Positions 1,756-26,589 of a stretch of 28,735 bases of DNA are shown one piece after another (position 1 is the stretch's first letter; every line of letters begins with the position of its first letter). Made by a program: the position numbers and the translations under genes. Source of the DNA: Ginkgo biloba. Its lineage: Eukaryota > Plantae > Ginkgophyta. Below the pieces are notes generated by a model. The model ran no database searches. It saw only the letters and a program-made list of their open reading frames with translations, and was not told the DNA's origin. Location: positions 57,725,040 through 57,753,774 of the forward strand of contig JANKJI020000002.1 in assembly GCA_024626585.2 (NCBI GenBank), read 5' to 3'.

Positions 1756-2067
1756 CTTTTTTAATCGTATTGCATCTTCATCTGTAGAGCAGCATAAAAC
1801 TGCTGCCTTCTCATCCTTGCAGGTGCCATGCTTCCCTCCACTCTCTAACTACATTTGTAGGTCAAGACGTGTGGCCTCTAATTCCTGGCAGCAACTACCT
1901 TTCTCTTCAAGTTCTGCTTGCAAAGAGTTCAATTTTTCCTGTGCCTGACTTAACTCAGTTCTAGTAGCCCTAAGTTGGTAATCAAGTTTTTCATTCATAG
2001 AAATATGGTGTTCTATATGATCTTCTATTGAATGTTTTGAATCCTTAGTTGCAACAAGAACCCTCTA
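1756..2067 (-). pseudogene. Stop-interrupted 3' part of the large FPP exon
   Basis: Continues in frame past the ORF-track stop: *RVLVATKDSKHSIEDHIEHHISMNEKLDYQLRATRTELSQAQEKLNSLQAELEEKGSCCQELEATRLDLQM*LESGGKHGTCKDEKAAVLCCSTDEDAIRLKK. It ends at a phase-0 AAG|GTAC donor at 1756/1755. LEEKGSCCQELEATRLDLQM*LES matches the FPP7-type LEEKxxCCxELEATCLELQLQLES motif as I recall it. Confidence 0.85.
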
Positions 2068-4496
2068 TAAATTCATAATTGTTTGCTCTGATTCCAAAAG
2101 TTGAGCCTTAAGATCCTCAATATTCTTATTTGCAAGTTGAAACACATTTTGTAACTCTTCTTTATCTGATCTTACACATTTAAGCTCATCTTTAAGTCCA
2201 CTGATTTGTTTATTCAATTGGCATTCAACCACTTCTTTTTCTGATAACAGTTTTTGAGCCCCCTCAAGCTGATCAAGAACATTTGCTGCAGAATTGTTTG
2301 ACTCAGGACATACAGTAGCTAATGTAGAAATCAAAGATTCATTTTCATATTTCCCTTTATCAAAATTATTAGCCTTTCCTAGTCCAAATGTTGGACTATT
2401 TGCACCTCGAGCTTCTGATTCACTGCCACTATGTGATTCATCATCCCATTCAAGTCGCTTCTTGATTGTAGCTCTCATGCTCGATACGTCTTGAAGTGAA
2501 AAGAAATGATTTACAAGCCAGTCCAATGCAGAACCGACTTCTTCAGCAAATTCTACCATTTCAGCTCTTCCTTGAAGGAGATCATTGCAAACTTTGACAA
2601 GACTTTGAATGATAGCATTGAATTCCGAATTCTGCCACTGCAAAACACGCACAGTATATCCTGGAACAGCTGTAGGGTTTCCAAATAGCAAAGAACCAGA
2701 AGCATTCTGTGGCATGGTCTGAGAATGATCATGATCCACCGAATTTGACTGAACAAAGCCTTCAATAAGCCCCAGTATCTTGTTAATAGATGCATTCAAT
2801 TTTGATCCACAAGAGGCATCTTTACTCTCTTTAGAATTTGAAAATGGACCCATTTCTTCTTCAGAAGAATTTCCTTCAGAGGGAGATTGTGGTGAAAATG
2901 TTTCTGAGATTACTCCTTCAAGAGAGCCATTGTTTGGGCGTTCAGTACTTAAACATTTTAGACTAGTTAATCTTTCTTTTATTTTGCTAACTTGCTCAGC
3001 ACCGGAATACTGTGATTTTGTAATAGCAGCCTTCACTTTCTCCAACACTTCTACCATGTTCTGCCCCTTTGCATGGGCTTCCATAATTGTATGGAAAAGA
3101 TCTTGAAAACTGGCGAGTGTAACTTTATCAGCCAATGTCCTAGATTGAAAGGAGGATAAATGCTGCTCTATAGATGTGTGGTTATCAGCACTCTCTTCCA
3201 TCATAGGAAAGGCATTGCTATTTTTCTCTGTCTTCAGTTCCCTAGGTTCATTTGTTTTCTCCTCTATTTCTGTAGGAAGTGTTGAAACTGCAGCCTCCTC
3301 AGAAGAAACTGTTGCTAAACGTTCCATCTCAACAAAATCGTCCATCAAATCTAACTCTGTTGACTCAAGCACTTTATTTGTGGGGATCCCTGGCTTCACT
3401 TTCTTAAATTGTGCTAATTCAGAAATCAATGCAGATGCCCAAGATTCAGCACAGCTAACTTCGTCCTCATTGCCTCCATCCACAGAAATTGAAGCAAGGC
3501 TTGGTTCATAACTCATGCGGACACCTTTTGACATTTCCACATGGCCATCAATAGCCATGCTACCTATTCTGCCAAGACCTTGTCCCCTACACAAAGCATC
3601 TAGGTGTGACTCAACTTGTGATAACTTACCAGCTGTCCGTGCGCACATGACCCGTGAAGCTTGAAGTTCACTGATTCTCTTTGTTAGAGTCTCTTTAAGA
3701 ATTTCATTTTCTTCTTCCATAGCCAGCAGGCGCTCAGAAAGAGCATTTATCTGTTTTATGCCATTTTCCCGAGAATTGTCATGCAAAGAATCCCCCATTG
3801 TTGAACCTGCCAAAATCAACCCTTTGCCTGCATGCAACCTTTTTTTCTTCCATTCAGCTGTCTCCCTACCCAGTGTTTCGACTTCCATTTTCATCTGAGC
3901 CACTGCAGCAGGACCTGGCAATCTTTTACGAACTAGCACCCGCAATCTTTGGCATTCAGTCTCCAACTTGGCTATCTTTTTCATACTCTCCAAATGTTGC
4001 TTGTTGGATGCATCGGCTGATCTTCTATTATATTCTCTCTCTTCATTACGGATTTCAAGTTCTTTGTCTAGTACACGAAGCTCATACTTAACTGCGGCAT
4101 TCTCATCCTCCAGAGATTCTAGTCTGACCTGCAGCAGATTTACTTGAGCTTCAGCATGAGACTTGCTCTCACTTAGTTCATTAAGTGATGTTATTCTCTC
4201 TCGAAGAGATTTGTGGATTGCACTATTCTCTGCAACTGCTTCTAGTAGCCTTTGGTTTGTCTCAGCCAGTTTTTCTTCTAGTTCTATCCGAATTCTATCC
4301 AGTTCTCTAGTTTTCTTCATGACAGCATCATGAATACTCTGCTCTTGTTCTTCTCGCATGTGTCTTAGCTGTCGCATGCATTCTTTCAGAGCTCCATCCA
4401 AATGAGAGACTCGATCTTCTGCTGCAACCTTCAGCTGAAGTGCAACATCTAGTTCTTGTTTTAGAGACACTGCCTCTGCCCCAGCTTTTTCCCAGC
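2065..4496 (-). CDS. FPP7: Filament-like plant protein (DUF869 coiled-coil, FPP7-like), large coding exon up to the first in-frame stop
   Basis: FPP family motifs: GWEKAxAEAxxLKQEL, RVSHLDGALKECMRQLR, LEIRNEERE, KIAKLETECQRLRVLVRKRLPGPAAVAQMKMEVE, SCAESWASALISELAQFK, LMDDFVEMERLA. An FPP7-type block is also present (GYTVRVLQWQ...LDWLVNHFFSLQDVSSMR). Acceptor GATTGAAG|GC at 4497/4496 is phase 1 and fits the upstream exon. The subfamily call is from motif recall. Confidence 0.92.
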
Positions 4497-4783
4497 CTTC
4501 AATCACATCAGTGTCAAAATTTAGTTGTGGATTATCTTAAATCAAACTTTTCTGGATAACAAAACTTTACTACAAGACATTTCAAATTCAGATGCAAGTT
4601 TCTACAAATTGTCTGAGGATCAGATTAAGGTACTTGGGAGGCGACATTGAACAAGCCTAACATCAAGAAGCAAAATCTAAAGTTTCACCCAATCCTGGAT
4701 TTGCCATTTGACTGAAACATGAGAAGTACAAAAATCTAGAGAATACAAGTTATATAAAACAGAAAATACAAATGCAATTCTAC

Positions 4784-4952
4784 CTGAAACTGCTTCTTCT
4801 GCAACCTTTGCATGCTGCCTCACTAGAGCATCTTTAGCATTGCTTTCAGCTAGAGCAGCAGATAGTTTCTCATTTAGGTTTTTCACTTTGTCCTCTAACT
4901 GCAACGGACTGACTATCTTATCTAAGTTCACTGGCACATTCCTATTCACATC
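4784..4952 (-). CDS. FPP7: FPP coding exon (169 bp)
   Basis: Acceptor TTTTGCAG|GAT at 4953/4952 and donor TCAG|GTAGAA at 4784/4783. Encodes DVNRNVPVNLDKIVSPLQLEDKVKNLNEKLSAALAESNAKDALVRQHAKVAEEAVS. Splicing to 4496 rebuilds the family motif QHAKVAEEAVSGWEKA. Confidence 0.92.
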
Positions 4953-5088
4953 CTGCAAAATTTATGATAGGTTAGCATACATATCTAAATGAAACACATA
5001 TTATGTGCAAAAGGATGAACTCTGCTACAATTTCACATAAAATATAGGACTTTAATGACACTACCCTGAACATAAGTAGCATGCTTAC

Positions 5089-10660: not shown

Positions 10661-13100
10661 GACCTTTAGACGGTCCTTATATATGTTAAGAACAAAGTAA
10701 TTTGAGTCTCACATCTTGTCGAGTGGTGTTACTAAACTAGTTAAGCAAACCAAGTATGGGTTTGGATTTAGGAATGTTGTTACAATGTTATTTTTGGACA
10801 TGAAACTCTAAACAAGGTAGATTTTATGCTTCTTCTATTACAAACCAAACAAATCAAGCAAAGTTCACTCTAAGAAGGGTGGAAGTCAAGGAAATGAGTG
10901 AAGTAGCTAATAGGTGGGCCCTATAATTACTGTCTCACCACCAATAGTAATTGTGATGAGGAAAAGGGTAAAATTGTCAAGTAGCAATTTGAAAACCTAG
11001 TATAGGGCACTCCCAATGAAGAAGTGACATGTGGCAAAAGACACAGGTTGGTTGGGCATAGGGCGGTCTCAACTGAGTATAACTAATCTATGGAAGATTC
11101 TAGAAATGACAAGCAATGCTATTTAAGGAAGGTCAAGCTTGGGCTTGACAACTTTGGGGATTTTTAGCATTTTTGAAGGACTGAAATTAGATTTAAATAG
11201 CTACAACTATTATGCACTAGGACATCTCTTTAGTTTGGATTTTGGCTCAAGGAAGGGGGATGTAACACTTCTTAGGCTAACATCACACCTTGGCAAGCAA
11301 TTTTAGCACAGTAGCAACGCAAGCAACCCCCAAAAACCCTAGAAGGTGAGACAAGCATCTCTGGAGCACAACGCCCTTCACTGTAGGAAATTTTGGCACC
11401 AAATGTCGGTTGCATTTTAAAGAACTGTTGTAGCAAAAGTTGTTGTGGGAGAACCTAGCTATCTATATACAAGGACATCTCACTATTCAAGGATTTTATC
11501 GAGTAAACTAACCCCAACTCATAAATATTGTTAAAAATACCCCAATTGCATAAGAATTCCTTGGATTGGTGTGCTTGCATACAAATCTACTTTGGGATAT
11601 GGCATAGTAATCACATGAAAAGAATGCTTGAAGTAGGGTGACTCTCTTTAAAGGTATTATGAGAGGGTTTTGATTGTCGTATGGCTCATTATGATCAAAT
11701 GCATGCTAATTGATTTAGGAAATCCTTCCTTATGTATGCTTAATTATTTTTTCCTATCCTATGTCAAACCCTAAGTCTTGGTCGTAGGGTAGCATAAGGA
11801 TGCATTGATTGTCAATTAGGGGATAATGAGCTTAGTTATTTTTATGCTTTTGTGGGTTTTTGTATAAGCTAGCAACAGGGTTGAAATATACTTGATCTTT
11901 TAGTATGATTATCAAGTTTAAATAATACCCACTAAACTATTATCCATATGGATTAAAATATAGCCAAGATTTAAGGTGGTTATCGAGTTGAAAGGATACT
12001 CACTAAATTGTTAGTCATCAAGCACCATAAATTAATATAAGTGGNNNNNNNNNNNNNNNNNNNNNNNNNNNNNNNNNNNNNNNNNNNNNNNNNNNNNNNN
12101 NNNNNNNNNNNNNNNNNNNNNNNNNNNNNNNNNNNNNNNNNNNNAGAATACTTATAGTAGGGCATCTCTCTCTAGAGTATTTTAGGAGGGTTTTCGATGG
12201 TTTTATGGCTATTTTTGATGAATTGGCACATTGTATAAATTAGAAAACTCTTCCTTATGCATGCATAGTGACAATTGCCCTACTTTCTAACAAACCCTAG
12301 GTCTTGACCATAGGGTCGAATGGGAATGCAATGGAAGTCCATTACAAGATATGGAGCCCAATTTATTTTTATGTTTAATAGGCATTTTGGTTTGAGCTAC
12401 TAGAAAGGTTGAAATATACTCAATGTTTTGGTATGCCTATTGGGTTGAAAGGATACCTACAATTGAAGGTACCAGAAATTAATATAATTAAATATTGTTA
12501 GCTGAGGGCAAAATCTACTTAGGTTTCCATGTGCTAAAAAGGTGTTGAAAAGATACCTAAGGCCCAACACCATGATTGACGTTGGGTGGAGGGATGGAGT
12601 CTAGAGGATCGATAGTAGTTGGTAGGGACTAATAGTTGCATGGGGATACAACTAGAGGTTTGGTTGCCATCACAATGAGCCCTTAAGGTCCACCCCAAGG
12701 GAAACAATGGATGTTATTATCCCCATATCACTATACGATAGATTAGTAGCCCTAGTTGTGTACCCTATGGTATGTGAAAGATTATATTATATATTCTAAT
12801 GCTTAGTGTGTGCATGTTAGAGCACAATTATTCTTACAAGTACAAATAGCAAAGCTATTACATCTTCATAAACATTTCCATTCATTGGTGGAAAATTGGA
12901 AAATGTCCCCAGAAAGTTTAAGATTACTATAGTAACTTTGATTTTGACATAAACAAAGCCCAAGTCATAATGATAAAATAACCCTCAGATGGTCCTTATG
13001 TATGTTACGAACATAATAAGTGGGGTCTCATATCCATATCCTCTTAGCTACCGAACTAGATGAAACCAAGTTGGATTTGTGTTTAGAAACACTTTACAAA
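10661..13100. repeat. Old repeat-derived block with two pairs of diverged direct repeats (10661-10785 / 12981-13100 and 11621-12040 / 12145-12495)
   Basis: By-eye alignment: GACGGTCCTTATATATGTTAAGAACA vs GATGGTCCTTATGTATGTTACGAACA. Second pair shares GAGGGTTTT, CTTCCTTATG, CAAACCCTA(A/G)GTCTTG and GGTTGAAATATACT in the same order. Confidence 0.65.
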
Positions 13101-17126: not shown

Positions 17127-19129
17127 CTTATCTAAATGGAAGAGTCTAAGGGCATCAAATTCTATGAATGAAAAAATATTTTGTGTTTTAAAAGAAAATG
17201 TCTACAAGCAGTTTGACCAGCTATAACACCTACGGTCACTGGCAGCCAAACAAAAGTGTATTTATCTGCAAAAAACAGAGCACATCTATGGTAGATGGGC
17301 TGCAACCTCAGGAAACATGTTAGACTGCTTGACATCAAAATCCTTGATCCTTGATCCTAAGCATATATCATATAGCGAAATAGGCCTAGATCCTTTTCTG
17401 TTTGTCAGCTGACATCCTGGGAAAGGCACAAAAAAGAAGATGCAGCATACAGAAGGCCACATAAGCACACACCCGGGCAAGTGACAAAGATTTACCTTGT
17501 GATGATTTAATTAAGGTCTAAACCTCAAAGTGCCTAATAATCTCTCTTTCTCATTTATTGATGTCTATGGGACACCGCACCATGGCCTCTACTAGGGATT
17601 GTATAAGGACACGTACCAGCAGTTGCCTGAAGGAAAAGCTTGTTGTCACTTGATGATTCCCATAAAGGGCATGACTTATAGAAAAGAAGTAATGAAATCA
17701 AACTATTTAAACAAGGCTTCCCCAAGTTTATGTGCACTTAATAGCACTCCAAATTGAAAATTTTGGATTTGTTTTTCCTGAGCAAGATTTTTTTCAACGA
17801 ACCATCTTTTCAACAATGCACACAAAGGTTAAATTGAAACACCTTATACGTACTGGTAACTTATGCACCACTCCCAGCAGAGAAGGAATAAGAAAGTTGA
17901 GATCATCTCCCAAGATCGTATGTCTCTGATATTAAATTTAACGGCATCTTCCCAGCAGGATCCTGAATCCTGCTAAATAGGTGCAAATAGCTGAAAATTT
18001 CTAAAAATGCAACTACAAAAGCGGTAATACCCAACTGACATTTATCAGGACCAGGATCGCAGTAAATACGCACAATGTTCTTCNNNNNNNNNNNNNNNNN
18101 NNNNNNNNNNNNNNNNNNNNNNNNNNNNNNNNNNNNNNNNNNNNNNNNNNNNNNNNNNNNNNNNNNNNNNNNNNNNNNNNNNNNNNNNNNNNNNNNNNNN
18201 NNNNNNNNNNNNNNNNNNNNNNNNNNNNNNNNNNNNNNNNNNNNNNNNNNNNNNNNNNNNNNNNNNNNNNNNNNNNNNNACCTTTGAATTTAATATACTA
18301 GAGTCTTTGAGTGCATATCTAGTCTTTATGAAACATCGTAATGGCTACCACAAGATAAATCCCATGTAACATCATAGCACACTTATGTTGACCTTTTCAA
18401 GCACTATACAACATTGTGACACTTCAGAAATTATATAATTGGAAAAATATCCATCACGATCACTTGTTAACTTCAATCAAAATTCAAATCGCATAATCAC
18501 TTGTTCATATACACATTTTGTAATGATCTATGTAGATTTGTCTAGAAGGGATTAAGATTCCTCCCACTTAGTTAGGTATTCAATTGTTGCCACAATATAC
18601 CTGCATCGCCCTTAGCAGGAAGGATGCCTAAAGGGACCATCTAAGACTTGGCCCCAATGTTTAAACAATTCTTGAGGCAAGTTAAATGCAAAAGCATAAA
18701 ATCCATTTGATGTAACATCCAACAATAGTGGAAAAGATAGTGGAAGAAAACCAAAAGAGGAAAAACGCCGATCACCGGTAACAAACCGTAAAGAAAACAA
18801 TGACGAAACGCGTCTGGAGAACTGTAGATTCAGAGACGCACATGCCAAACCTTCCAGTAAATAAATGTATGCAGAAGATTACAGGTGTGTAAGACTAGAC
18901 GGCACCAGTTGTAGATGTTCGCGGCTTTACTTTTGAGGAAGCGAGCTCTCCCAAACGAGTATTGTGCAGATTAATTTACTCTAACCAAGAATTGGCTTGA
19001 TTGCATGCCAAAGTCCAAGATAAACTTTACATAAACAGAATTCTTTTTTTTTATTAGGATGCTGAAGATTGCTCGTATCGAAATCTGGATCTGAAGATAG
19101 ATCTGCACTCGAGAGTATTTTATTGTACG

Positions 19130-19930
19130 GTTAGGTGGAACTGAGCTTTAAAGATTTTGTTTATTGAATAGGTTAAGCGAAAACTGGATTTAAGCTTTAA
19201 AAAGGCGGCAATTAGAGGAAACTAAGCACAATGGGGAGGTATTTGGATGAACGAAGACGAATTAGAGTTCAAATCGGGTGTGTTATCTGATACTTGCCAA
19301 ATTTAAGCTTGAAGTCTCTGTTCCTGACGGATTCGGGCTTGAATTTGAGCCAACTCTCGAAAACTGGACGAATTTACACTTGCAGATGACGCATTTTACG
19401 GAACAATTGGCAAATTGAAGCTGGAAGTTGAGACATTCTGTTTGAAATTTGACGAAGCCGCGCTTGCAGACATTTAAACCAAGCAGAAACTGACAAACTG
19501 CGCCTGAGGCTACCGAATTTGGAGAAATTACACTTGAACTCGAGACATTTATCCAAATTTTGGAGAAACCGCGCTCGAAGTTGACAAGTTTTGTCGAGAA
19601 TTGGCGAGTTAACTCTTGCAGATATGGTGTTTCATCAAGCATAAGGTGAATTGCGGCTCTAACTTTAGTGCAAGAATGCAAATTCGGCTTAAAAATGTGC
19701 CTCTTCGTCGAACACCGCGCGAATTTCAACTCAAGCTTTATGTCGACCAAAGCTGCAACATCCTGTTGAAGACATTGATGAATCTCCTTCAATTTCGTCC
19801 TTCCTGAAAGAACTTAAGCTCGAAGTTCCGGCATTTTCTCGAGCAATAGGCGAGTACATCCTCAAAAGTCATACATTTAGGTCAAAATTTTAGCAAAAAT
19901 CATAGTCAAATGTGAAGAAATATGAACAGC
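19130..19930. repeat. Cryptic helically phased ~41-42 bp degenerate tandem array
   Basis: Approximate consensus TTGRCGAAWTYRMRCTYGAAGWTGASRCATTT. CTYGAA-like anchors at 19267, 19308, 19338, 19379, 19421, 19463, 19503, 19533, 19574, 19615, 19657, 19688, 19730, 19819 and 19861, with weaker units on either side. Confidence 0.8.
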
Positions 19931-20159
19931 ACCGAGCAACAGGAGGGATTTTTAACATATACTCGCGAATTTCACGAATATGGTCCCGGCGGCCTGGTAT
20001 TTTGTCCAATAAGACGGTGCATTCTGTCAGACATTTTGTCAAACACTTTGGCTACGTTGGTGCCAGCGAGCATGATTTCCGAGGCATTTTCTTTACCACT
20101 TGGTGCACGTAGACTTAAAGTTGAAGTATTAAATTGGTTTCGAGGTATTAAATGCGCTG

Positions 20160-20202
20160 TCGTGGTGATTGCCCACTGCGAAAGGAGGAGTGAACTATAT
20201 AG
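20160..20202 (-). promoter_or_regulatory. Candidate core promoter: TATA box, Y-patch and initiator
   Basis: The minus strand reads CTATATAG (20195-20202), then TTCACTCCTCCTTTC (pyrimidine patch), then AATCACC about 30 bp after the TATA. It sits at the upstream edge of the CpG island. Confidence 0.4.
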
Positions 20203-21609
20203 TGACAGATGGCCATTGAATGTAAAAATCAGCAATCGGAATACGTCAATCGGAAAATTTTTGGAATTTGTGTAAAAGTGCACTGGGGTTATTGAAGAAA
20301 TAGATGGAATTTCAACATAAATAAATATGTGTCGAATTTCAATGTTTAACAATTCCATAAGCAAGGACAATGGTATGTTGATGGAATCGCAACATGGAGA
20401 TCTAGGGTTGAATTACCAAAATGGTGGAATTGCAATAAATTTTTTGCAATAGTTGAAATTACAATGTTATCCTTAATTTTGTCAGTCCAAATTTTAGAGC
20501 TTGAAAAGAGTGCAATCAGAGGTAGTTTGTCACCTCCATAGTTTACTCATTTTGAGACGATATGCATTAAATGCCTTACGCACACAAAAAATGAGTGTTG
20601 TCTATAATGTACTTTATTGCATTTTAATGATCAATTCAAATGGGTTGAAACTCTTATATGGCGCACAAGAGGAGAGAAAAACTAAATTCAATTAAAAAAA
20701 ATTGTATTTGTTTTATGATTACAATTGCAACTGTTGATCTTTGCAACATATCAAATTATCTGATAGTTTTTTCAAGAGATTTAAGTGCTCTATTGAGCAA
20801 CACACTACAAGAGACACTACTAGTTACAATCCGAAATTTCACTTCTGACAAGACCATGTGCTTCAATAAGTTTCTTGTAATACACTATTTCTCTCTATNN
20901 NNNNNNNNNNNNNNNNNNNNNNNNNNNNNNNNNNNNNNNNNNNNNNNNNNNNNNNNNNNNNNNNNNNNNNNNNNNNNNNNNNNNNNNNNNNNNNNNNNAT
21001 AAGGGGGGTGGGGGTGGGGGATGGCATGTTAATATGGAGTACCAAATTTAGAGGGCTAGTGGAGGACAAGTGACCACTCACATCTTATTATTTGGCCTTC
21101 CAACAACCAACCTCAAGATGTCGAAGATGACAAAAAGTGTGTCCTCCTATCCATCTCATGCGATGATCCATCCCCTTGTGGCTATGAATCATGATTCTAA
21201 CATTTGTCGGTCGAGACTCTAATGGCTCAGAGATTATGTTAAAAGGGTTATGATCAATATTGATCTAGTGAATTTGGTTGTTAGCAGATGGTGTTTGCCA
21301 ATTATATCAGAATAGATCTATTGATAAGCAAGTGGTGTTTGCTAATTTGTTTTGGTGTTTGTTTGAGGCTTGTGACTTCATAGCATGTTTGAGTCAGATT
21401 ATCGTGGCCCTAACTCTTCACTATAGCCTCGCACTCATTTTTGGAAAGATCTTGGTTAGGACGGGGGGGGTTTGGTGGAACGTCGGAGTACCCTTCAGCC
21501 CCACCTACCCACTTCCTCCCTGCATCATCGAGGACTAAGGAAGGTTCTTTGTTATTTTTAGAAATTAATTTGGCTTTTTCTAGGAAAAATTAATAAAAAA
21601 ATAAACTTG

Positions 21610-22175: not shown

Positions 22176-24720
22176 ATGTCTAAATTACTTGGTAATATCC
22201 CCAATGACTCTGAAAAACTCTCCACATCAAATTATTCACAATGGTGAATGTTGATGGAAGACATTTTAATCTTTCATAAATTGTGGACTATTAGAAATAA
22301 AGAAGAGAAAAGAACCCCTAATAATAAACGAGTCAAACAATCACATGTGCAAGATAAAATTCATTCTTATGAAGCATGGGGAAAACTGTCAGAGTTGTTG
22401 AATAAGAAATTGAATAAAAATAAGAGGGATCTATAATTAAAACTACTAAATGAGATAATTCTTGAAGGGGGGGTTAATTATAGCGAATTTTGACAACATC
22501 AACAAGAATTCAATACATTTTGTAAAAGATCATCAAGAGATTAAGGAGGAAGACAAAGAAAAATTATTCATGGTAGTAGATTCATAGGATTCATTGGATG
22601 AGATATGGATATTGGATACAAGATCCACTCAACATATGACATTTCAGAGGAAATTTCTTTGGAATTTTAGGAAGGAAGATTTGAGACTAATAAGTTTGGC
22701 AGATAATACCTCACATCCTTCAGTTGGAATTAGAGATGTGAAGATGCTTCTTCCAGATGGCAAGGCAAAGATCATCAAGAATATTTAGTATGATCCTACT
22801 TTTAAAAATAACTTTCTATCATTGACTCAAATAATTAATCAAGACATGCAGATAGTGATGGAGAATGGAAAATATTCCATCAATAATGCAAAGAAAGGGT
22901 ATATCACAGTTGCAATAGGTTATGTGGAGAAGAAATTGTTGAAATTCCAAGGAAAATCTATTGTTCAACAAAAGATAATGAAATAAAAATAGATGATGAA
23001 ATGAAGACAGATGATGAGATGAAGATAGATAAAAATTTAGATGAAAATCTTCTACGTCTAAATTTTTAGAACATAGTAGTGATAGGGAATTTTCTAAGAA
23101 CAATTTGCCTAAGTTTTCTAAGGAAAATTCATCTAATTCTAAATCAGTTTTGTAGAAAAGAAGACTTAGTGAAATTGATCTTGATGAAACTCAGAGTGTT
23201 CCAAAAATGGAAAAATGGGCTAAGAAAACTTTGAAATATGCTAATCTTGAGGAGTTATCTAGATCTGGAAGAAGAAGTTCTCGAAAGAATGAACAAGTAA
23301 ATTATGCTCTTATGGAAGAAGTTATGAATTCCTTAGAACCAAAAAGTTTTGAAGAAGCAGTAGATAAGAAAGAGTGGTAGGAGGATATGCAAGAAGAATA
23401 CATAGCCTTGATAAAAAATAACACTTGGAAGTTGGTTGATTTACCACCTGGAGTGAAACCCATTAGTTGAGATTGCATTTATAAAATAAAATATAAATTA
23501 GATGGATCAATAGACAAGTACACAACAAGATTTGTGGCAAAGTAATATGCTTGACAAGAAGGAATCGATAATACATAAACATTTTCACCCATAGAAAAAT
23601 GGAACATGATAAGGACCATCATGGAATTTGGATGGAAGGTACATCAAATGGATGTCAAAAGTTCCTTTTTGAATGGAGACTTGAATGAAGAAGTTTATGT
23701 TTACCAACCTCAGGGATTTGAAGTGAAAGGAAAAGAACACATGGTTTGCAGATTGGTCAAATCATTATATGGTTTAAAATAGGCTCCTCGAGCATGGTAT
23801 TCTAAGATAGATGAGTATCTTAGAAAATGTGATTTCAAGAAGAGTGCATCAGATGATAATCTCTATGTAACGAAAAGGAAGGATAGTATTGTGATTATTT
23901 TTCTCTATGTTGATGATTTGATCATCACTGGGAATGATGATAATTTGATTGAAAAAGTGAAGAGGGAGTTAATGAAAGGATTCAAGATGACAAATCTAGA
24001 TCTACTTCAATATTATCTTAGAATTGAGGTTTGGCATCTCAGGGATAAGATTTGCATATCCTAGTTAAAGTATGCTTCTGAGATCTTAAAGAGATTAAAG
24101 ATGGAAGATTACAAGGCATCAACAAGTCCTATGGAACATAGAAAAAAATTCTCATTAGCTGAGGATGGAGAAAAATTTGATGCAATATTATATAGGCAAC
24201 TTGTTGGAAGTTTGATTTATCTTATTACCACAAGACCTAAATTATCTTTTGTAATTAGCATTTTATCACTATACATGCATAGTCTAAGGTTAGATCATTG
24301 GAAAGAAACAAAAAGAGTGTTGATATATTTTCAAGGCATAATTCATTTTGGATTGGAATATGATAAGAATGATAACTTCAAACTTGGAGGGTTTTCAAAT
24401 GTAGATTGGGCTAGAACCCTAGACGACACGAAGTCAACTACATGATATGCTTTTCATATGGGCTCATGAGTTATTTCATGGTGTTGTAAGAAGAAGAGAA
24501 CTATTACTTTATCATCAACTGAAGTTAATTATATTGGAGTTGTAACTGCAGGACATAAGGTAGTTTGGTTGAGGAGGATCTTGAAAGATCTTGGTTTCTC
24601 ATATAATGGTCCAACACAATTGTTGATTGGAAATCAAAGTACAATCAAGTTAGCAAAGAATGCAGTGTTCCATTCAAAGACAAAACATGTTGAGATCCAT
24701 CATCATTACATCCGAAAGCT
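22176..24720 (+). mobile_element. Degenerate, internally deleted Ty1/copia retrotransposon (gag N-terminus, protease, RT, RNase H)
   Basis: gag start MSKLLGNIPNDSEKLSTSNYSQW*MLMEDILIFHKLWTI. Protease WILDTRSTQHMT. RT from 23336 (EPKSFEEAV...NNTWKLVDLPPG...HQMDVKSSFLNG...SLYGLK*APRAW...LYVDDL, with YVDD at 23906-23917). Then YRQLVGSLIYL, and RNase H FSNVDWA...FHSKTKHVEIHHHYIR. Many premature stops; runs into a gap; no LTR or PBS recognised. Confidence 0.95.
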
Positions 24721-26589
24721 NNNNNNNNNNNNNNNNNNNNNNNNNNNNNNNNNNNNNNNNNNNNNNNNNNNNNNNNNNNNNNNNNNNNNNNNNNNNNNNN
24801 NNNNNNNNNNNNNNNNNNNNTTTTCTCATTTACTTAAATGGAAATATTAGGTAAGGAGTTGTCAACTATCTCATAGGTATTGGTGACCATCAAAATTGAA
24901 TATATTTAGGGATTTCTTGAAAAGAATTTTTTCACTGGTAGTAAGAGTATAATGCTTATATGTACCCTACCATATCTAACACATTTTGAAATGATGATAA
25001 AGTATAGAAAAGTAACATAAGGAGATAAAATAGTAGTAGGTGAGGCAATTGGTTACAAACACTACACAACATATTATTAATATGATGGCAACTTCTTAAC
25101 ATTATATACATTTTTGTGTGCATCTTATTTTCTTAGATTCATTTATATTTGTTATAACGTAAATGTTCATTGTTATATAGTTTTGTTGAATAGTTTTTTT
25201 AAATAAGAGGGAATGAGGATTTATGTGGGAGGAGGAAAGGTTGATAGTGGTCAATTCTCTCATGCTTAAAATCATTTCATGAAGTTAAACCCCTTGCCAT
25301 TGCATAACATACCTTGATTTGCAATTTTTTTTACTATTCATGATCTCCAACTACCTTCAAGACAAGTATTCTTAAGAATGCATGGCACTTGCAACTCATT
25401 CACATTCAATTTCATAAACTTATGAAAGTGATTATATTCTTTGTATTAGATTTGCTTCCCACTAGTAAATAAATAAAATAAGTTGGAATGCCAAATTATA
25501 TTGCTCCAAATAACTTTCTCNNNNNNNNNNNNTTAGGAATAAATTAAAATAGCATTTACTAGATTCTAATCTATTTTACTCTCTCTAAATTTAAAAGGTC
25601 ATGCCTTAATTTAATCTAGAAAGATTCCTTTAAGCTTTGTATATTAACCACTTTGAAGTGGCCCTTAACATCACAACCTTGTCTACATGAGATGAACTAG
25701 GGCTATAAAATAATGCTCAAGAAGGCTCCTAAGTTTATTGCCAAGGTATTCCATGAGGTGAGTGGTCATTTGGCGGTATATGTTTTATCCTTTACATTTT
25801 GGATTTGTTGTTTAACACATATGTTGGTAGGATATGTTATTAGTCCATTGCCTATGGATATCATTCTTTAAGTTATGGGTTGGAGAGTAATAAGAAGTCT
25901 ATGACTACAATCCATTCCATTCACATTGTGATAAAGAGATTTTACTTATTTCTTAGAAGATAAAGCCGTACACTAATATGTTATCTAGAAATCCATCATT
26001 GTGTAATGTTTCTTAATAGAGAGAGTTATGTTATTTACTACTTAAATTGGGTCAAGTTTCCAACTATTTCCATGCCCTTCTAAAAATACATGAAAGCCCT
26101 TATTACACTTGTTGCCATCCAGAATTCCCACTTCATTCCCCCTAGGACGAAGTGGTAAAAATTGACTCCAACAACCTCTAAATGGTATAAGTGAGAANNN
26201 NNNNNNNNNNNNNNNNNNNNNNNNNNNNNNNNNNNNNNNNNNNNNNNNNNNNNNNNNNNNNNNNNNNNNNNNNNNNNNNNNNNNNNNNNNNNNNNNNTAA
26301 ATATTAACTATTAATATTAATTACTCTACTTTATTAATTATTAATTACTAAAATCTATTAAATATTAACTACTAATATTAAATATCATTTACCCCCTCCT
26401 CTAAAAAATAAAGAATAAAATAATTATTGTATGACTATGAATGAAAAAATTCAAGTCAGATATAATAATCTTCTGTAATATATATTGAGATATATTATCT
26501 ATATCTTATAAATAATGGCGAATTAACTTATAATGTATTTGCATATTTGTTAAGGTTCTTTAGGTGTTTCTTCATTCTTTTTTAACCAT

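Follow-up and report, generated by a model that had tools for sequence, protein, structure and literature searches.

Gene setting and transcribed leader

The window, by which we mean the whole 28,735-nucleotide stretch of Ginkgo biloba DNA that was analyzed, carries a minus-strand gene for a filament-like plant protein (PF05911), which matches Ginkgo Gb_04431 (FPP7-like) at 100% identity. Its large coding exon occupies positions 2065 to 4509, and coding exon 2, which encodes residues 37-94 of Gb_04431, occupies 4782 to 4955. Coding exon 1 of Gb_04431 was absent from the called bases between 4955 and 18745, as was the exon after the leader; both probably lie within an N gap or were misplaced in the assembly. 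Using single exons or existing protein sequences as database queries, we recovered conifer FPP7 genes; a quick protein tree grouped these with Gb_04431 as sister sequences and set the Gb_23430 paralogues apart (support 97-100). A group of six conifer sequences is referred to below by the inferred name "Pinaceae-type".

Contigs from two runs, X14 and X16, span 18745-20093 (within a contig of 6520 nt) and 18745-20276; each of them exits the window at 18745, with a probable donor at 18752/18751. Although these runs were taken as RNA by guess, a splice joint at 19102-19298 supports that assignment. The joint defines an alternatively spliced 195-nt GC-AG intron (19103-19297, minus strand) with its donor, G/GCAAGT, inside a repeat unit and its acceptor at TGCAG/. 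Since this intron has a consensus donor and acceptor on the minus strand, the direction of transcription is fixed, and a plus-strand transcript was dropped as a reading because the intron is canonical solely on the minus strand. Exon 1 of the leader of the Gb_04431 transcript thus spans 19298-20276 on the minus strand, 20276 being the contig end rather than a mapped start site, and a second leader segment spans 18745-19102, with the next exon not among the called bases of the window. A block holding the branch point and acceptor (19087-19154, minus strand) aligned with the leader-intron acceptor of Cryptomeria FPP7 (L014, ~10900-10967), at which a 330-nt intron is missing from a Cupressaceae-type transcript. 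A raw RNA run (X22) contributed 32 reads, almost all of which belonged to other loci, and yielded neither a start site nor an expression level.

The repeat array described below is therefore situated within exon 1 and the alternative intron of a long leader that shares its strand with FPP, and the assignment of this leader to FPP comes from orthology rather than from contig read-through. The original prediction had placed the array inside a CpG island upstream of FPP; the island and the position at a gene 5' end held up, but the array lies within the transcribed leader and not upstream of it. The Ginkgo leader contains 22 upstream ATGs. More generally, gymnosperm FPP7 leaders (Ginkgo 18745-20276; L001, L013 and L016) measure 1-1.5 kb, contain 17-22 upstream ATGs and retain introns alternatively, features that suggest translational or splicing control.

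CpG and CHG sites are depleted across most of the window and retained from ~18500 to 20500. Within this island (18501-20500, observed/expected ratio 0.7-1.24), the CpG ratio reached 1.0-1.24 at 19001-20000, compared with mostly 0.1-0.5 outside, which bears out the prediction that CpGs are kept here and suggests from base composition that the island is unmethylated. Just past the 5' end of the RNA contigs, 20280-20680 is a multi-copy repeat with a depth of at most 14 times single copy that also occurs in other transcripts. Further away, 24101-24850 holds decayed Ty1/copia-like reverse transcriptase-RNase H fragments that were recognized from their translation, the piece tested giving no Pfam match.

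A leave-one-out matrix and self-identity analysis delimited an array of ~15 diverged 41-bp units at 19215-19880 (minus strand), in which 30/31-bp variants are one subunit short. Anchors fell at 19227, 19268, 19308, 19338, 19379, 19421, 19463, 19503, 19533, 19574, 19615, 19688, 19730, 19819 and 19861, giving spacings of 41, 40, 30, 41, 42, 42, 40, 30, 41, 41, 73, 42, 89 and 42; the 30-nt unit cores had a mean pairwise identity of 0.45. The matrix thereby reproduced the predicted recurrence of a diverged unit about 15 times and its spacings, except that a unit proposed at 19657, which had split the 73-bp interval into 42 + 31, was too weak to be picked. Self-identity of the array was maximal at lags of 41 (z 6.8) and 42 (z 4.1), with minor peaks at 21, 31, 62, 71 and 111, so that the array is a minisatellite in the usual sense of a head-to-tail unit of 10-60 bp. 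Tandem Repeats Finder missed it, the units being too diverged. The 41-bp consensus also resembles itself at lags of 10 (16/41), 20/21 (19/41) and 31 bp (16/41), with ~11 matches at other lags, and slippage by one subunit is thus expected mechanically.

We also examined whether the array could be read as protein or act as RNA. A sense frame free of stops for 176 codons crosses it (19283-19810, minus strand; P 0.01 versus shuffles), within which a 169-codon open frame (19283-19792, minus strand; 119 aa from the ATG at 19642) amounts to a non-conserved uORF of no known family and with no homologue. Neither a Pfam match nor a homologue nor a period-3 signal was found across the array, and neither frame nor peptide was kept in conifers, so the stop-free frame probably arose by chance within the repeat. 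A uORF end seemingly shared by Ginkgo (KMRHLQV*) and L001 (KLRHLQE*) was rejected, as L007 and L008 do not keep the frame intact. The claim that the spacings break any reading frame was accordingly too strong, since the stop-free frame does cross the array, but the frame is not conserved and the array is non-coding. At the RNA level, Rfam gave no match for the leader array, and its folding was no better than that of shuffles (z +0.95).

Partial second copies of the array, 19300-19496 and 19856-19973, were found in one DNA-type run. This run (X1) was not counted as independent of the assembly, since its reads appear assembly-derived, given a uniform depth of ~75 and an exact join over an N gap, and it covers only part of the genome; the copies seen in it were few, decayed and partial. 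Nine of the 13 differences listed for the 19300-19496 copy were C>T or G>A, changes that make the second copies look like decayed, methylated captures of the leader. At least three other contigs contain the 19856-19973 segment with an identical GC-rich flank, which suggests capture by a mobile element. In addition, the assembly differs from both RNA-run contigs at ~10 clustered sites in 19872-19903, mostly by deamination-type changes, and the RNA allele is closer to the subunit consensus than the assembly allele; this patch is probably an assembly mosaic or a gene conversion from a decayed copy or paralogue.

Helical phase of the array

The prediction of AA/TT periodicity at ~10.3 bp, alternating with GC, was borne out. 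Spectra of AA/TT and of WW dinucleotides over the array had their global peak at 10.25 bp, at 23-26 times the shuffle mean, and none of 1000 dinucleotide shuffles matched it; the SS spectrum peaked at the same period. The array thus has the WW/SS antiphase at 10.0-10.5 bp by which rotational-positioning sequences are recognized, and 10.25 bp is the helical period of nucleosomal rather than free DNA. Phase analysis showed that the signal is coherent over ~90 turns (19100-20030), with 38 A-tracts in register over ~900 bp (Rayleigh R 0.70) and 42 CpGs lying 5.0 bp out of phase with them. A wedge model predicted a bend of 54.7 degrees per 62 bp, compared with 39.8 +- 4.4.

Two features of this signal departed from what had been predicted. 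First, a further Fourier peak at ~41.5 bp was expected, whereas nearly all WW power lay at 10.25 bp (10.8, versus at most 0.3 at 41, 20.5 and 13.7 bp). Because, in addition, arrays built from random 41-mers reached the observed power in <1% of runs, the 10.25-bp peak is not a by-product of the 41-bp repeat. Second, the 89-bp jump had been called off-phase, but WW phase is constant from ~19100 to 20030 with this gap included. The in-phase signal even continues past the recognizable units on both flanks (z 2.6 and 3.3).

The strength of the periodicity was then compared with that of real DNA, using ~1,400 control windows for which a protein scan supplied mostly angiosperm loci. The array had an 800-bp WW score of 30.3, whereas the ~500 gymnosperm windows otherwise scored at most 18.6, and the 893 windows from other plant FPP loci at most 14.3. 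The array is real and unusual.

Conifer orthologues and the origin of the phase

Part of the array (19404-19756, minus strand) is collinear with the orthologous Pinaceae-type leader (L001 371-732; E 0.001-0.004), and a second leader block (18841-18972, minus strand) aligned with a conifer transcript (L012 55-193). With the Ginkgo-unit matrix, all Pinaceae-type leaders of sufficient length gave a cluster on the same strand (scores 36-58; none of 500 shuffles), and these leaders were the top 16 of 103 loci, although an unrelated angiosperm locus reached 35.7. In the reverse direction, a profile made from conifer leaders alone recovered the Ginkgo array with E 3.8e-4 from 253 kb of sequence. A recurrent sense-strand core, TTCAAG / TGCAAG / TTCGAG, stands at near-integral turns in Ginkgo and occurs in the conifer orthologues too. 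The scores for this homology are modest, yet concordant in strand, order and position, and the collinear block of ~350 nt shows that the repeat predates the Ginkgo-conifer split and is not a recent transposon repeat. Ginkgo and conifers separated ~300 million years ago. The same matrix found no units in the Cryptomeria leader or in paralogue leaders and only weak ones in L013; a search for a cycad orthologue found none, and a metagenome pattern scan for the array gave no match. Exon 1 of Cupressaceae (L014 10128-10620; L013 1-493) nonetheless has a WW period of 10.5-11.1 bp (P<=0.003) without recognizable units, and the Cupressaceae leader keeps its CpGs despite having lost the units.

If phase had been kept by selection, as was proposed, orthologous arrays should have evolved more slowly than neutral sequence and through phase-preserving indels. 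This was not seen in conifers. Among Pinaceae-type sequences, identity was 0.87-0.89 in the unit block, 0.88-0.90 across the whole leader, 0.90-0.91 in the 3' UTR and 0.89-0.92 at four-fold sites, so the block changes at the four-fold rate. Conifer leader indels (+1, -2, +3, +5, +7, -9, +14) are not whole turns, unit spacings are 69/70, 32, 40 or 47, and 30, periodicity in Pinaceae-type leaders is weak (P 0.02-0.2), and in Cupressaceae the units are gone. Since four-fold identity between Ginkgo and conifers is 0.69, detectable leader homology is expected without selection. A separate block of ~85 nt near the 3' end of the leader (L001 874-959 / L014 11370-11455) shows 87-88% identity when Pinaceae-type sequences are compared with Cryptomeria, against a four-fold identity of only ~0.67 for the pair, and so may be a leader element that is truly under constraint.

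By contrast, the neutral alternative that had been raised, an old minisatellite of ~10-bp subunits that slips by whole subunits, fits the data at least as well, given the self-similarity of the consensus and the outcome of simulation. Neutral decay of the observed consensus reached the observed power in 45-85% of runs (53% with 1-bp indels) and in 14% when free 5-20-bp deletions were allowed; starting from the observed consensus makes this simulation partly circular. Moreover, whole-turn quantization in the Ginkgo array comprises only ~3 independent events. Selection on phase is thus unnecessary for explaining the data.

We therefore favor, with roughly even confidence, a reading in which the 5' leader of the Ginkgo FPP7-like gene holds a very old hierarchical minisatellite whose helical phase has persisted passively. 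A subunit of ~10 bp, combining an A-tract with CG, would have expanded first to ~20.5 bp and later to a 41-bp unit, all before the Ginkgo-conifer split, the order of these steps being our reconstruction, and unequal exchange among similar subunits would have added or removed whole turns to leave the 30/31-bp spacings. With the leader presumably unmethylated and Ginkgo evolving slowly, CpGs and phase could survive as unit identity decayed. The minisatellite array probably has physical effects on chromatin: its predicted curvature would bend the DNA one way and set the rotation of nucleosomes ~250-1150 nt downstream of the start site, and the phase may have been made sharper by mutation bias linked to nucleosomes or transcription. 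Some observations sit less easily with neutral descent, namely that phase extends past the recognizable units and that Cupressaceae exon 1 is periodic without them. Furthermore, the simulations with random 41-mers indicate that the founding unit was already helix-periodic, which a neutral account leaves unexplained.

A possible, though unlikely, alternative is that selection maintains the array as a structural cis-element comparable, in plants, to the periodic An/Tn clusters (PATCs) of Caenorhabditis (PMC4947018). Its phased A-tracts would fix nucleosome rotation or absorb transcriptional supercoiling at the gene 5' end and help to keep out the methylation of the surrounding transposable element (TE) DNA. 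The array has the strongest 800-bp WW signal of all windows compared, a period of the nucleosomal type, a predicted bend of 54.7 degrees per 62 bp (against 39.8 +- 4.4) and ~90 coherent turns; it is transcribed and non-coding, lies in a CpG island amid TE-dense DNA, and its origin in an old transcribed minisatellite parallels a recent proposal (bioRxiv 10.64898/2026.08.08.743475). However, the Pinaceae-type orthologues have neither excess conservation nor whole-turn indels, the units were lost in Cupressaceae though leader CpG stays, methylated Cryptomeria intron repeats reach WW scores of 15-18, so that periodicity alone does not mark protected DNA, and the case concerns a single locus. Pinaceae may have lost a function that Ginkgo keeps. 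We are somewhat more doubtful still of the broader form of this idea, in which gymnosperms, with their giant and heavily methylated genomes, co-opted old leader minisatellites as helix-phased PATC counterparts that hold nucleosomes in register and 5' ends unmethylated, with the Ginkgo array intact and its conifer orthologues decayed.

It is also conceivable, but improbable, that mutation itself wrote most of the periodicity: nucleosomes stably positioned downstream of the start site would make mutation and repair rates depend on the minor groove and, in the course of hundreds of millions of years, would have remodeled a repeat that was not periodic at first. This would account for the in-phase signal outside the units and for the unit-free periodicity of Cupressaceae exon 1. 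Such processes have precedents in the 10-bp WW periodicity found downstream of start sites in broadly expressed genes of worm, fly and zebrafish (PMC7706728) and in the remodeling of a minisatellite by mutation reported for PATCs (bioRxiv 10.64898/2026.08.08.743475). Against it, the consensus subunits resemble one another at the base level, beyond W/S; an unbroken phase over several nucleosomes requires quantized linkers; and known +1 signals cover ~150 bp, not 900.

We hold it to be quite improbable that the array binds proteins on one face of the helix or acts at the RNA level through splicing, uORFs or structure: the recurrent core at near-integral turns, conifers included, the GC donor within a unit and the 22 upstream ATGs would fit, but the cores are only 45% alike, conifer spacings include 47 and 32, and neither the folding and Rfam results nor the broken uORF frames of conifers agree with it. 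Least likely is an internal repeat of a TE inserted near the gene or a decayed region encoding a repeat protein, to which the partial second copies and the stop-free frame had pointed, since the second copies, with mostly C>T and G>A changes, look like decayed leader captures, the collinear conifer homology rules out recent insertion, and period-3 signal, Pfam match and homologue were all lacking. The retained CpGs and the orthologous, collinear position in conifer leaders likewise agree with the expectation of no recent high-copy TE origin, whereas an earlier origin from a TE, preceding the divergence of Ginkgo and conifers, may be compatible with the data.

Comparison with known systems

A literature search found no plant equivalent of a helix-phased leader array, many subscription papers lying outside its coverage. 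With its defined unit, phase and orthologues, the array offers a concrete plant test case for how genes are kept unmethylated among transposons in 10-Gb gymnosperm genomes; even if neutral, it represents a repeat structure that has persisted in a gene leader since before the Ginkgo-conifer split.

The closest anatomical likeness that had been suggested was to PATCs, nematode sequences that guard germline-expressed genes against silencing, and the phased A-tracts in ~10-bp register over ~900 bp (R 0.70) do match them. Like PATCs, which are called at a value above 60 with the Fire et al. 2006 algorithm (PMC4947018), the array consists of short An/Tn clusters that keep a ~10-bp register over hundreds of bases, ~1 kb in all, with predicted curvature. 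It is likewise non-coding and within a transcribed gene region, as the RNA-run contigs, the GC-AG intron and the lack of a conserved ORF indicate, and it derives from an old minisatellite at a gene with repeat-rich surroundings. PATCs go back to a 35-bp minisatellite internal to a Helitron, which was later remodeled, and old transcribed minisatellites have been proposed to become mechanical insulators in a study whose main text does not include plants (bioRxiv 10.64898/2026.08.08.743475). In contrast, the Ginkgo array belongs to a plant, lies mostly in an exonic 5' leader rather than an intron, has a period of 10.25 and a 41-bp unit that is itself four turns and predates the Ginkgo-conifer split, came with no Helitron link or other TE context, and does not have its phase conserved in orthologues. 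The Helitron origin fails, and we did not class the array as a PATC; the likeness is one of anatomy.

The array also resembles the +1 nucleosome signal (PMC7706728) in its WW/SS antiphase downstream of a start site. That signal is, however, an average over many promoters and ~150 bp long, while the Ginkgo array is visible at a single locus, extends ~930 bp, is based on a repeat and starts ~250 nt from the contig end.

Long-range WW periodicity of ~10.4 bp is shared with the internal arrays of gymnosperm LTR elements. In a Cryptomeria FPP7 intron (L014 45282-47973), 16 copies of a ~41-bp palindromic motif stand mostly 166-167 or 176-177 bp apart, close to one nucleosome repeat, with the two spacing classes one helical turn apart; the array probably lies inside an LTR element. 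It differs from the Ginkgo array in being CpG-depleted, palindromic, well homogenized and intronic, and its motif has no similarity to the Ginkgo unit.

Finally, phased A-tracts are characteristic of curved satellites, kinetoplast bent DNA and Widom-type positioning repeats. The Ginkgo array is like these sequences in that its repeat length comprises whole helical turns, its A-tracts share one face and bending is predicted, and unlike them in being short, low-copy, unhomogenized at 45% identity, apparently unmethylated by its sequence signature, and located in an mRNA leader.
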